This document shows, piece by piece, positions 47,339 to 54,250 of a stretch of 64,000 nt of DNA. The translations under genes were made by a program, and so were the position numbers. Each line of letters opens with the position of its first letter. The first letter of the stretch is position 1. The notes beneath the pieces are model-generated. The model had not been told where the DNA came from. It saw only the letters and a list, made by a program, of their open reading frames with translations, and did not search any database. The stretch comes from Perna viridis (Eukaryota), in the NCBI GenBank assembly GCA_037379345.1, contig CM074514.1, positions 13,826,001 to 13,890,000 on the forward strand. The letters are read 5' to 3'.

Positions 47339-48084
47339 TTATACAATGGCTGGCTCATCAGAGATCGACATACCCAAAGTGGGGTTTGGTTCTTTGTTCT
47401 CTATAGTTCTTATCATTCCACGATCTTCCTGTGTTTGTTCACTTATTTTGTCCACTTTACCGTTCATGCTTATTGCTTCGTCACCAGGCTCTTTCGACTT
47501 TTTGTTTTTACTCTTGCTGTTGATTGAATTGTCATGAACCGGAGGGGACAGTGTTGACATGACCGTTGAAAGTTTTTCTAGGAGTAAAGGAACGTAGCAT
47601 ATGAGGTTTGAGAATGGTTTTTCAGATGGACTTATTTTTCTGTTTAAAACACTCAAATCTTCTTCAAAAACTGCACCAGGCTTAAGCATTTGTTGTAAAT
47701 CATCTACCAGGCATTGTACGATGCTACAATCATCGTCTACTTCATCAGTCAAGTGGTTTGTACTAAAATTCTGCGTAGTCAGCTTTTTCTCGATATCTTC
47801 CACAACCAATCGAATAGAGTTCACTATCATTAAAAATTCACGAAAAAGGTCTACTCGTACACCCGTTGATACTGCACGAGTTTTATTTAAGTATGTATAT
47901 AGTTCCAGTAATTCGGCAAGAGAAACTATATGGTCCTGTCCTTTTGGCATGATAATGTTTAACGTTCGAATAAAATCATACATTGTTTCATCAAAGTTCA
48001 CCGATCTCTCCTTAATTTTGAGAATTTCATCCGATATTTGATTCCTCCACACCTCTGTCAAAAGACCATCTGAGTGCTCAGTTA
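47339..48084 (-). CDS. Death domain/TRADD-N-like protein, final exon (helical C-terminal region)
   Basis: TTGCAG acceptor at 48085-48090. Long ORF VTEHSDGLLTEVWRNQ...EPAIV then TAA. Phase 1 matches the previous exon. Confidence 0.8.
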
Positions 48085-48960
48085 CTGCAACAAAAATTAT
48101 AGAACTAAAAAAACAAATGTTTGCTTTCATCATTTGCCAAGAGAAATAAACATTTAAATTTTCCACTTTGACATAATTACTGCTGGAACAGGGTTGTGGA
48201 GGTAAATGCCATATGATAACTTCATTGGTCAATATATAGCGGCAACTTAAAAAAATCTGTTATGTGACCATGGTAACAAAGTGACAAATAAGTTTAATTA
48301 AGATCTGTATGTAGTGAAATGTAACTTGATCTACCTTGGGTTCAACATGTACAACTGAAGCGACTCACATTTACAGATCGTGTGCATTTAAATTTCGCCA
48401 AGACTATCATAAATCACTTATAAAAACCATGATTATTAAGTTACCTAAAGTGCATGGCTTGAACCTTTATGGATCAATTTGTTTGGTTATACCGAGATAG
48501 CATAAATCTACTTGATAGTTATCAGGGCGAATTTTAAGTCCATATATCCAGTATAATTTGGTAATCTCCTGTGTAACCCAAAAATACCTGGTGAAGATAT
48601 ACCCCTCAAAATATACAATATTTTACCCCTGAAATCAATAAATAATTATTTGTTCATTTACGAACATTAGTTTTATAATATTGATCGTTTATTATCAACC
48701 CGCATGATTTCATGGGGTAAAATAGTATTTGCTATTTTTTCTTTACTTAGAACCAGCTTTTTTGAGGGGGAATATTTTACAAGGTATTTTTGTACATTAT
48801 TTTAGTATGGTCTTCACCCCGTTACATTTCCAATTTAAAGTTTACCAGGGATATTTTTTCCTCGGATCGGTCCAATATGTAGATTAAATTAAGAGTAAAC
48901 CTGGCAATTGTTTCTATTAAGTACACTAAAAAATCTAATGGTAAATATAAATGTACTAAC

Positions 48961-49443
48961 CTGATATTGGTTCAACAGAAGGCTGCGAGTCAAAAGATGG
49001 TGGGGCTAAGGTGTCAGTGGGATGAACACATTCCTTGAACTTTCGCGTCAAGAAAAACTCCCTACATTTGTCTAGGGCCTCATTTGATAAGTCTATTTTA
49101 ATGTCTACATATTTGGCACCAATTGTCTTCATGGCATTTTCTGTAACGAACACATTTTGGCAAATAGCGTGCAAACGACGAGTTTTATACATTTGATTTA
49201 ACGATTCCACTGCACCAAGTGTCAAGATTTTGAATCTCACATACAAGCTACCCTCGCTTATATCAGTCACAAACATCTCACGAATATTTATAGCATTTTC
49301 TAATGTTTTCATGTGCAGTTCAGGGTTAACTAAAACTGCCTCATAAAACGAGGATGCGATCTCATTGAATCTTTCCTTCCAGAGGCCCACAAATTCTTTC
49401 ACTGGATCAATGTGAGCAACTGTTATCTTTAAGCCAACTTCAC
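48961..49443 (-). CDS. Death domain/TRADD-N-like protein, exon 5 (TRADD-N-like domain)
   Basis: AACAG acceptor and GTTAGT donor, 483 nt. EGSLYVRFKILTLGAVESLNQMYKTRRLHAICQNVFVTENAMKTIGAKYVDIKIDLSNEALDKCREFF fits the invertebrate TRADD-like N-terminal domain pattern (by eye). Confidence 0.8.
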
Positions 49444-50419
49444 CTGTTGTAAAAACAAAAAAAAGTGTAATGACCATGGATCCTATTTCTCAAAAAAAAG
49501 TTTCAACCTATGTAATATATGTGAGCTATCTACATATAATTTGTTTTGTAATTAGCCATGTTATTGGTTCTCTTTGGAAAACCTAGGTTATTTTATAATG
49601 AACTCATTACAAAGATGTATCACACTTTCATTCTTTTTTTTATACAGCCATTTAATTCTAAAATAGTAACATCATCTACATAATCTCCATCTGACAGTTT
49701 CAACAACAAAAACGTGCATTTTGGAATGGTCTGTATCCGCCATTTCTATTCATACTTGACATCAATGAAACAATACAGGCGTCAATATCGAACGCGTCGA
49801 TTCTTTTCGAACTGGTTATTGCGTCCATTCAAATATAGGGATAAACTGCACAGTCGATTTATCGGGCTTTTGTATTGAAATGAACAAGAAAATTACTACA
49901 ATATATGGGTGTATGTTCATATGTACCTGTAACGACTGATACCATATTCAATGGTGATTTAAGGTGTAAAAATTCAAACATTCGATTGAAATTGATTCAG
50001 TACATGTGCACTATGACTGTATGAAGTATGTGTTTATATCACATCAAACGCATGTTTCGTGTGATTTTAATGTCTCATATTGTATTGATCGTTAAGATAA
50101 TTTCACTTCAATCAATTCATCATATTATGTATTAAGTGAAATGCTAGAGGCTGTCTGGCAAGCTATTTTCTGATTTGCTGCCATCCGAACGGAACGGAAT
50201 TCCAACCTCTCACGCTGTTTGAGTAGCATCACACGACGCTAACCTCGAAAATTACGGGATTCGTTTATGAATAACGTTACTGTCGTGTGTGGCAAAAGAA
50301 AATGTAAAACGCGTTTTCCATCCATCCAAGTAAACAAGCATTCAAATAAAGGTACTTTACATTGTTTTCTTCAAGTTTAAAAAAAATAAAATAAACGCGA
50401 TATAGTAATAACCACTCAC

Positions 50420-50518
50420 ATGCATTGATGCCTCTATGTAATGACGGCTGTCTGTGACCCTTTGAACTGCCAGGTCTTTTGGCACTACCTGATCTGCTTT
50501 GGGGCCGTGAGACACAAC
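50420..50518 (-). CDS. Death domain protein, exon 4 (basic linker)
   Basis: TTTCAG acceptor and GTGAGT donor. GCVSRPQSRSGSAKRPGSSKGHRQPSLHRGINA, phase 1-1. Confidence 0.75.
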
Positions 50519-52757: not shown

Positions 52758-52832
52758 CACAGGGGCTTGCTTCCACTATCAAGTATACAGCACCACTAGT
52801 ATATATTTTGATAGTAGGAGCAAGCCCCTGTG
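52758..52832. mobile_element. 75-bp palindromic MITE with 7-bp TSD
   Basis: CACAGGGGCTTGCTTCCACTATCAA versus TTGATAGTAGGAGCAAGCCCCTGTG. Flanked by ATCAAAT at 52751-52757 and 52833-52839. Confidence 0.85.
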
Positions 52833-53048
52833 ATCAAATTTAACGATTTTAATGGACTCACCACTCTCTATTACATTGATCAACAAAATATGTATGGCAG
52901 CAAAATATACATGAAAAATGGACTATCAAAGTCCATTACCACTTGATATTTAAAAAAATGTCTATACCAGTATTGTAAACACTTAGACGAGCAATAACAA
53001 TCAGTCCAATCAAATGAAGTATTTCAGATCGATTGAATATCAACCCAC

Positions 53049-53288
53049 CTTCCGCTCGGTATAGCCCACACTGTCTTAGGGCATGAATAAGTTTAATTCT
53101 ATTGGCAGATTTTCCAGCATGTTCCTGCCATAAACAAAGACCTCTATATGCCAAATACGCTTTGGACTGGAGATATTCCTGAACCTCCAACTGCGCAAGC
53201 TCAAGTTCCTGCAACCCAAGAGTCCGACAAACCTCTTTCCACTGTCGAATGATGTATGGAGCAACATGGCGGAAAACTTCTCTGATGT
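53049..53288 (-). CDS. Death domain exon (exon 2)
   Basis: TTTTAG acceptor and GTGGGT donor, 240 nt. DIREVFRHVAPYIIRQWKEVCRTLGLQELELAQL...AYRGLCLWQEHAGKSANRIKLIHALRQCGLYRAE carries the Death-fold W-K-x-x-x-R-x-LGL, L-x-x-W and L-x-x-AL-x-x-x-G signatures. Confidence 0.88.
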
Positions 53289-54207
53289 CTAAAATAAGAA
53301 GATCATCTACTGTTCAAATGTTTAAGGATTCGATTATTTGTATAATTTAAGCATTGAATATCATTACCTTAATTTTAAGACTTGTCGCTTTATTTTTGTA
53401 TGCAATAAGTAATTTTACCTCAAGATTCGGGTTAAAGAAAAGTCGATAGTTGTAAAAAAAAAAAAAAATAAGTTGTTTGTAAGCGGAAAATTATTATTGT
53501 ATTGATTCATGCAGCAAGTTTTAGTGTACTGTAATTTAAAGTTTTATCAAGGTTCCTCACAATAGAATGTATAATGAGTTTGTATTAGATCACTTAATAG
53601 TTCAAAAAGGATTCAAGTTCAATCAAATTGTTTGAAAACTTTTAAAGTTCCTTTCAATATAATCACCGAAATTGTTCAATTTTTTTTTTTATTTCGTCCT
53701 CGCGGTAGAAATGTGTGACCCTTAGTAGTTGATATTTTCCAATTTATATAGTATTCGACCTGGAACTAAGCTTTAGTTTATCATAAACAGAAATATTTTG
53801 ATATTGTCATGTGAAATAGGTCAAGTGATTTTTAAAACTTTTTCCATTTTTTGAATTCCAAGTATTAAACGTGATTTTCGAAATGTCTTATGAGTTGCTT
53901 GGTGATCAGTACCTTCCAAGTTTCTTACCCCTGAGAAAGAAAAATATAACTTCAATCTGAGGCGGTCACTTAGGTGCATTTTAACATCTCCACTTAAAAT
54001 GCATTTATTGTTCCATTAAGAGGTATTACAGATTAATTACGATTAGTTTTTGTATTTATAATATCAGCAGAAATAATTCTAATAATCCAATTTTAAATTA
54101 CAAATACACGCGTGCAAGTCAGGTTTACATAATTTACACAAGTAAATGCACATCTTACTAAAATTTGTGATTTTGTTTTGCATGTAGTCCTACTAAACTC
54201 AACCTAC

Positions 54208-54250
54208 CATTTACTTCTCCGTGCTGGTTCTTGTCTTTATAAGCATCCAT
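54208..54250 (-). CDS. Death domain protein, first coding exon
   Basis: MDAYKDKNQHGEVN plus G, donor GTAGGT, in-frame TGA just upstream of the ATG. Phase 1 joins the Death domain exon in frame. Confidence 0.7.

Follow-up and report, generated by a model that had tools for sequence, protein, structure and literature searches.

What would a bivalve use a protein for in which a Death domain stands first, a TRADD-N-type domain follows and a long C-terminal region closes the chain? The question is raised by a gene on the minus strand (54250..47339) of a 64,000-nt stretch of the Perna viridis genome (GCA_037379345.1, CM074514.1:13,826,001-13,890,000; hereafter the window), which an earlier note, made from the letters alone, had described as a permuted, lineage-specific adaptor with an uncharacterised tail. 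Here we describe its transcript, its domain composition and its conservation across bivalves. Our findings confirm what the note observed, bear out its interpretation in part, and support, with a probability of roughly 0.7, a model where a single-copy, expressed bivalve gene encodes a cytoplasmic scaffold, 576 residues long, whose three folded modules are joined flexibly and in which the Death domain would dock and the other two would bind partners. Its interest lies mainly in the third module, a domain of predicted SPACA9 fold for which we found no earlier report in a Death/TRADD-N protein, and this interest rests on the predicted structure.

Gene structure and expression

Six minus-strand exons of 43+240+120+99+483+746 nt join in frame into 1731 nt, that is 576 codons and a TAA stop, both in the reading of the strand and in the contigs described below, and exactly as the earlier note had assembled them. 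All five introns are GT..AG and all five are of phase 1. The features, in positions of the window, are:

54250..54208, minus strand: exon 1, 43 nt, with the ATG at 54250, 14 codons (MDAYKDKNQHGEVN) and 1 base
54207-54206, minus strand: donor GT of exon 1
53288..53049, minus strand: exon 2, 240 nt, 80 codons, phase 1-1; Death domain
52568..52449, minus strand: exon 3, 120 nt, phase 1-1 cassette; end of the last helix of the Death domain, then a basic, Ser/Pro-rich linker (EIGRLEFQTFEKVPSLSRPPSRQSSASKKRPGTGKKEQN)
50518..50420, minus strand: exon 4, 99 nt; second part of the linker, basic and Ser/Arg/Lys-rich, with 0 acidic residues in 32 codons
49443..48961, minus strand: exon 5, 483 nt; TRADD-N superfamily domain, core ~49034-49441
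48084..47339, minus strand: exon 6, 746 nt including the TAA (47339-47341)
48084..47549, minus strand: first part of exon 6; predicted SPACA9-fold helical domain, residues 10-178 of the exon 6 piece
47548..47339, minus strand: last part of exon 6; predicted disordered C-terminal tail, a basic stretch followed by an acidic one

The locus is confirmed as a real, expressed mollusc gene. The evidence comes from Logan contigs of four runs from four studies, placed on 47341-53330, for which the tissue is not given and the RNA nature is a guess; nonetheless, since the contigs skip canonical introns, they derive from spliced transcripts. The joints 48084/48961, 49443/50420, 50518/52449 and 52568/53049 are present in all four runs and, again in all four, the loose end of the contigs at 53289 matches, in reverse complement, the end of exon 1. 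Exons 2 to 6 lie within single contigs (record 13 of run X7 and record 17 of run X9), and thus the Death exon and exon 5 occur in one transcript, in the order that had been predicted: an N-terminal Death domain, then the TRADD-N-type domain, then ~250 residues. Contig sequence reaches up to 285 bases 5' of exon 2 (record 17) and includes up to 1238 bases of 3' untranslated region beyond the stop (record 7). Intron 3 is partly covered by thin contigs, at a depth of 2-8 against 16-28 over the exons, as unspliced precursor would look. The list of open reading frames (ORFs), as had also been remarked, shows the gene only in fragments: 52936..53214 (in frame), 53076..53267 (in another frame), 48956..49477 and 47339..48232. 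In a search of the own genome exon 5 and exon 6 each match only themselves at E <= 0.01, and the gene is therefore single-copy. These and the following searches, as well as the structure predictions, were run per exon or with natural full-length orthologues. A short upstream ORF (54266-54298, minus strand) begins with ATG, stops after 10 codons and ends just 5' of the main start at 54250.

A predicted SPACA9 fold at the C-terminus

The region after the TRADD-N-type domain can no longer be called uncharacterised. In the AF2 model of exon 6 (14-row alignment), residues 10-178 form a helical domain with a predicted local distance difference test (pLDDT) score mostly >90, and this domain is predicted to adopt the SPACA9 fold; only the last ~65 residues are disordered in the prediction (pLDDT 39-48 over residues 181-247). 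Foldseek gave 10 matches for exon 6 at E <= 0.001, all of them chains of ~145-160 residues from cilia or sperm microtubule entries (seven from 8to0 and one each from 7un1, 9cpc and 9ijj). VIA, which is independent of Foldseek, placed 8otz_0A first among 48,161 chains (Z 17.7, root-mean-square deviation (rmsd) 2.0 Å, 147/156 residues), followed by 9cpb_5D at Z 13.7, with the next fold at Z 9.3. A second look with VIA gave Z 17.7, 17.7, 17.6, 17.4, 17.2 and 15.2 for 7un1, 8otz, 9cpc, 8to0, 8ou0 and 9cpb, respectively (rmsd 1.9-2.4 Å, 139-150 residues aligned), the next fold standing at Z 9.4. We take the matched chains to be SPACA9 because the SPACA9 paper (PMC9564825) gives 7UN1 as its model of the singlet microtubule, because the bovine endpiece model contains tubulin, SAXO1 and SPACA9, and because the helical-bundle protein that all these entries share is SPACA9.

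SPACA9 is a microtubule inner protein that lies in the lumen, in cilia, in sperm flagella and in the manchette (PMC9564825; PMC13373224; bioRxiv 10.1101/2022.09.29.510157). Its fold, a bundle of four helices in which H1 and H3 are each followed by a two-helix insertion, was called unique, Foldseek being reported to have found no similar fold in the PDB or among AlphaFold human proteins (Gui et al. 2022, PMC9564825). From the lumen, SPACA9 binds the tubulin intradimer and interprotofilament interface, with an 8-nm-repeat packing; the residues of the human protein that contact tubulin or SAXO are described as Q20, Q21, H37, T61, R64, Y117 and N123. The likeness of the predicted fold extends over nearly the whole solved chain, and in both proteins a helical core is followed by a disordered tail. 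On the other hand, sequence similarity is not detectable (8-12% identity in the structural alignments), and SPACA9 is essentially one domain plus a disordered tail, whereas here the fold would be the C-terminal domain of a 576-residue signalling-type protein.

The P. viridis tail is part of a strongly conserved family, with 39 invariant columns across 9 tails. A Pfam scan of exon 6 gave no family match; a profile search with the tail alignment retrieved 7 proteins, all fragments of this same family, and a search with the tail region of the Mytilus orthologue 2 proteins, both again of this family. Inside the putative SPACA9-fold domain an acid-rich loop carries DEVD (47735-47746, minus strand), and six of the nine tails have [DE][DE]xD there; in so acidic a loop, DEVD as a candidate caspase site is a weak lead.

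Canonical SPACA9 was looked for in the genome exon by exon with PF15120, which gave 4 matches at E <= 10, the best at 17.9 bits and below the cut-off, in a search that is insensitive to a gene of short exons and so does not establish that canonical SPACA9 is absent. The four matches were judged noise: they lie on four different contigs, and the best one matches nothing in the PDB.

Exon 5 belongs to the TRADD-N superfamily

On the comparisons that follow, we regard the membership of exon 5 in the TRADD-N superfamily as settled, and it is sequence evidence rather than structure that decides it. A phmmer search with exon 5 against 1.84 billion representatives gave 21 matches at E <= 0.001, the weakest of which include P0018 to P0021 (E 2.4e-5 to 4.2e-4), bona fide proteins of the Pfam family TRADD-like_N (PF20694, on which they score 28.2-35.2 bits). 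Among the 22 aligned sequences, the query counted, seven match PF20694 at E <= 0.01. When the bivalve domain family (alignment A5, 7 rows) was compared by hhalign with bona fide PF20694 members (alignment A6, that is P0018 to P0021 and their cluster members), the two aligned over 129 columns at 98.3% and E 1.4e-14.

The AF2 model of exon 5 (29-row alignment, pLDDT 88.8) runs in the order b-a-a-b-b-a-a-a-b-a, with strands at 2-13, 56-62, 66-72 and 109-118 and helices at 21-37/40-51 and 75-86/89-98/101-107. The predicted structure is a four-stranded sandwich with two kinked helices, in keeping with the TRADD-N fold as Kaur et al. 2021 (PMC8195603) define it, in which a four-stranded antiparallel sheet and kinked helices make up an RRM-like alpha+beta sandwich of two layers. 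As the earlier note had anticipated, the model superimposes best on TRADD-N: human TRADD-N (1f3v_A) ranks first by Foldseek among 350,542 chains (prob 0.99, E 0.013, TM 0.48), 1f2h_A ranks first by VIA among 48,161 chains (Z 7.8, rmsd 3.7 Å, 102 residues), and 1f3v_A does so in a second look at 998 chains (Z 8.4, the only value of Z >= 8 there, rmsd 2.9 Å, 108/158 residues). In these structural alignments exon 5 and human TRADD-N share 12-13% identity, and a profile search of the PDB with the exon 5 family gave chance rows only (E > 1). Between strands 56-62 and 66-72 lies a Gly-Ser turn, G64-S65 (49247-49252, minus strand); S65 is invariant in all seven rows of A5, and GS is the consensus across the 29-row alignment. 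A tiny residue followed by Ser in the strand 2-strand 3 turn is the superfamily-wide 'uS' signature, and the Gly-Ser turn corresponds in position to Ser67, which contacts TRAF2 in 1F3V (PMC8195603).

Within the superfamily, exon 5 groups by sequence with the DEDD2-like kind that Pfam calls TRADD-like_N rather than with TRADD. A genome-wide scan for PF20694 gave 2 matches at E <= 0.01, the exon 5 locus not among them. Locus L003 (G000:C5:40762910-40767899, plus strand) has a TRADD-like_N exon of 50.6 bits and, 4.6 kb upstream of it on that strand, a DED exon of 43.1 bits, and is probably the DEDD/DEDD2 orthologue of this genome; PF20694 thus marks a DEDD-like gene, and the Pfam family covers the DEDD2-type clade. 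Compared by hhalign with the TRADD-like_N exon of L003, a single sequence, A5 gave a weak 23.8%, with the Gly-Ser register aligned alike. A further locus, L004 (G000:C1:40104458-40104604, minus strand), holds a TRADD-like_N match of 37.8 bits in an open frame of 839 codons, an unusually long single-exon carrier.

Just after the domain, an HPxDxLxxP motif (48998-49024, minus strand) is invariant in all seven rows of A5. It is recognisable in the distant short relatives P0011, P0013 and P0015 and missing from P0018 to P0021.

The Death domain and the basic linker

Exon 2 had been proposed to encode a complete Death fold; taken alone, it matches Pfam Death (PF00531) over profile positions 15-78 of 86, nearly the whole domain (E 4.8e-10, 39.9 bits against a cut-off of 22.6). 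In the orthologues the match covers positions 8-84 at 26.7-39.4 bits, the remaining few residues being drawn from neighbouring exons. A profile of the orthologue family matched only Death domains in the PDB, namely those of THOC1, FADD, Fas and RIPK1 (E 0.0014-0.004), and no Death subfamily stands out among them. Exon 2 matches Death and does not match DED (PF01335), and in this it differs from the N-terminus of DEDD and DEDD2.

The linker that follows is strongly basic, with 16 Lys/Arg against 1 acidic residue in its last 58 positions and with KKRP and KRPG stretches. A Pfam scan found no family for exon 4 or for exon 3 (taken as 33 codons, the last 6 excluded), and across orthologues the composition is kept and the sequence is not. 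In Mytilus, isoform X3 (P0032) is without the 40 residues equivalent to exon 3, which fits a phase 1-1 cassette exon; in P. viridis no joint that skips exon 3 is listed in any of the four runs.

Orthologues and distribution

A search with the scallop orthologue returned 12 proteins, from Ylistrum, Argopecten, Pecten, Mizuhopecten, Mytilus, Saccostrea, Magallana gigas (= Crassostrea gigas) and Crassostrea virginica. Full-length orthologues, from Mytilus, Saccostrea, Magallana, Crassostrea, Ylistrum and Argopecten, measure 512-540 residues; the P. viridis protein has 576, its disordered C-terminal tail being ~55 residues longer than theirs. The closest to it is that of Mytilus, with 66% identity over exon 5 and 61% over exon 6. 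The orthologues are single-copy in mussels, oysters, scallops and the pearl oyster, where the Pinctada record (P0002) holds the exon 5-type domain and the tail and is without a Death domain. The description of the gene as lineage-specific holds only in part: mussels, oysters and scallops share all three parts, and among more distant relatives, besides a unionid fragment, a nemertean protein has a Death domain and two exon 5-type domains.

All 12 proteins are named either 'uncharacterized' or 'Death domain-containing'. Their precomputed annotation gives Death in 10 of the 12 and a TRADD or SPACA9 family in none, so that two of the three modules are currently unannotated, and we found no literature on the orthologues under six LOC identifiers.

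A proposed three-module scaffold and its rivals

Death domains act through homotypic assembly, and the N-terminal domain would bring the protein to a receptor or adaptor complex built on Death domains. Some 70 linker residues, basic and rich in Ser/Arg/Lys and encoded by two phase 1-1 cassette exons, would connect it to the TRADD-N domain. The latter, of the DEDD2-like kind, may bind or switch a downstream partner, with the exposed sheet and the Gly-Ser turn, on which the superfamily binds its partners, as the putative surface, and the SPACA9-fold domain might anchor the complex on tubulin or microtubules, or else on a different helical protein. The binding partners, all of them, and the pathway itself are what we infer. 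In this sense the predicted structure points tentatively to a connection between microtubules and the signalling of cell death. That the tail is a diverged SPACA9 homologue which tethers the Death and TRADD-N domains to microtubules and couples the state of the cytoskeleton to death-fold signalling, with a caspase freeing the module at the exposed acidic DxxD loop, is a bolder proposal, and one we consider improbable.

Known proteins provide much of this architecture. In DEDD2 a DED stands at the N-terminus and TRADD-N comes after it, and expansions in bivalves and further sessile marine animals have a constant part, a Death-like domain (usually DED) and then TRADD-N, ahead of a variable C-terminus (Kaur et al. 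2021, PMC8195603). The order of the domains, said to be permuted, is indeed reversed with respect to TRADD, but it is no novelty, since DEDD2 and the invertebrate expansions, bivalve ones included, already place the Death fold first (PMC8195603). With vertebrate TRADD (PF09034 and a C-terminal Death domain; 1F3V, 1F2H) the P. viridis protein shares both domain types and the conserved Gly-Ser turn; unlike TRADD, it has the reversed order, leaves PF09034 unmatched and adds a putative SPACA9-fold domain. It also resembles DEDD/DEDD2 (FLAME-3) and the invertebrate DEDD2-clade proteins, in which a Death-fold domain likewise comes first and a basic linker and a TRADD-N of the PF20694 kind come after, although its N-terminal domain is Death rather than DED and its C-terminal domain is predicted to be SPACA9-like. 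It resembles the bivalve expansions in the variable C-terminal region after TRADD-N, and differs from them in being single-copy and conserved across bivalves instead of a species-specific expansion (PMC8195603). A SPACA9-like domain in a Death/TRADD-N protein appears to be unreported: the name SPACA9 has 0 occurrences in the available text of PMC8195603, the source-data tables of which may still list this family; no paper was found naming both SPACA9 and TRADD, or SPACA9 and oyster; and co-mentions of 'SPACA9' and 'death domain' look incidental, judged by their listing.

Several results weigh against the three-module scaffold or the domain assignments on which it is built. For exon 5, the proposed fit to the TRADD-like pattern holds in hhalign, phmmer and the fold model, but Pfam alone leaves it sub-threshold (PF20694, 17 bits against a cut-off of 23.7, E 0.0052), and the classical TRADD_N family (PF09034) is not matched at E <= 10. 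Structurally, a subdomain of HMG-CoA reductase comes within 1 Z unit of TRADD-N (7.7 against 7.8, and 8.0 against 8.4) and none of the 350,542 chains matches exon 5 by Foldseek at E <= 0.001, and therefore structure by itself says only that the domain is RRM-like. Both models come from shallow alignments, of 29 rows for exon 5 and 14 for exon 6. For the tail, the identity of the matched chains as SPACA9 was deduced from the papers and the chain lengths. The SPACA9 family (PF15120) has no match at E <= 10 in the tail from the window or in any of the 14 family members, profile and single-sequence searches of the PDB listed no SPACA9 chain, and atlas feature searches gave no usable match or scores of 0.80-0.81 only; together with the tail-profile and Mytilus tail-region searches, these found no link to SPACA9 at the sequence level. 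Finally, the core of human SPACA9 alone does not bind the microtubule lattice in vitro, the disordered tail does, according to a 2026 preprint (bioRxiv 10.64898/2026.06.14.732105), and thus a shared core fold does not predict microtubule binding.

The scaffold has to be set against other explanations. The protein might be, in line with the DD-to-TRAF adaptor of the earlier note, a permuted analogue of TRADD that connects a Death-domain receptor to TRAF through its TRADD-N domain, the tail being accessory. Structurally, exon 5 matches TRADD-N best, and the Gly-Ser turn takes the position of the TRAF2-contacting Ser67; this turn, however, is superfamily-wide and occurs also in clades with no known TRAF link (PMC8195603), PF09034 is unmatched, and the domain groups with the DEDD2-like family and not with TRADD. 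We consider such an analogue possible, though unlikely.

A place in the lumen of axonemes, those of gill cilia or sperm, would follow if the protein were related to SPACA9, or had taken its place, as a microtubule inner protein of cilia or flagella and had gained the Death and TRADD-N modules. To this we give little credence. The tail matches the SPACA9 fold with high specificity and the fold was called unique among human proteins (Gui et al. 2022, PMC9564825), and no canonical SPACA9 exon rises above the cut-off in the exon-by-exon search, insensitive as that is to short exons; yet sequence similarity to PF15120 is missing, ~400 extra residues are unlike the 8-nm-repeat packing described for SPACA9, and expression is seen in runs from four studies, with the tissue not given.

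Similarly doubtful is a DEDD-like nuclear or nucleolar regulator, acting in the nucleus rather than at receptors. The layout mirrors that of DEDD/DEDD2, the basic linker with its KKRP and KRPG stretches resembles a nuclear localisation signal, and exon 5 is related to PF20694, which also marks the DED-linked gene L003. The N-terminal domain, however, is Death and not DED, and the hhalign match to the L003 exon is the weak one given above; to our knowledge, DEDD has no SPACA9-like domain. Least probable of all is a tail that forms a helical bundle of a generic kind and resembles SPACA9 only through an artefact of predicting from a shallow alignment, since, even though the alignment has 14 rows, helical bundles commonly reach Z values up to ~13 by chance arrangement and a sequence link is lacking, the Z of 17.7 is about twice that of the next fold (9.3-9.4) and recurs in six independent entries from four species, pLDDT exceeds 90 over most of the domain, and the SPACA9 structures, of 2022 and later, postdate the data on which the predictor was trained, which makes memorisation unlikely.

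Death-fold and TRADD-N proteins are already viewed as a varied set of immune and apoptosis tools in sessile marine invertebrates, and the scaffold proposed here, as a conserved single-copy member and not one of a species-specific swarm, offers a tractable experimental entry point. If its SPACA9-like fold holds true, the known reach of the fold would extend to a second family, in which it is joined to signalling domains, and a link between microtubules and Death-domain signalling would become testable.

Surroundings of the gene

Rfam gave 0 matches on the whole 64-kb window, and no notable repeats were found around the gene. Within intron 2, a near-perfect 95-nt hairpin (52748-52842, minus strand; -50.3 kcal/mol, z -9.97, 0 of 200 shuffles as good) is a dispersed palindromic repeat with at least 62 genome matches from 317 candidates, and hence more likely a MITE-like element (miniature inverted-repeat transposable element) than a unique microRNA precursor. 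Intron 4 holds a piece of ~36 nt (50138-50210) at a depth of 105-264 in three of the four runs (38 in X5), against 16-28 over the exons; this stretch is also a dispersed repeat (40 matches scored from 985 candidates), and the depth would thus come from other copies or transcripts. Elsewhere in the window, retroelement fragments occupy 22235-25394 on the plus strand, with an RVT_1 ORF at 24822-25394 (E 1.3e-22) and two adjacent ORFs without a family match. The neighbour, on the plus strand and convergent with the gene, is a sodium/calcium exchanger gene, a large exon of which lies at 38975-39733 (Na_Ca_ex, E 1.8e-17).

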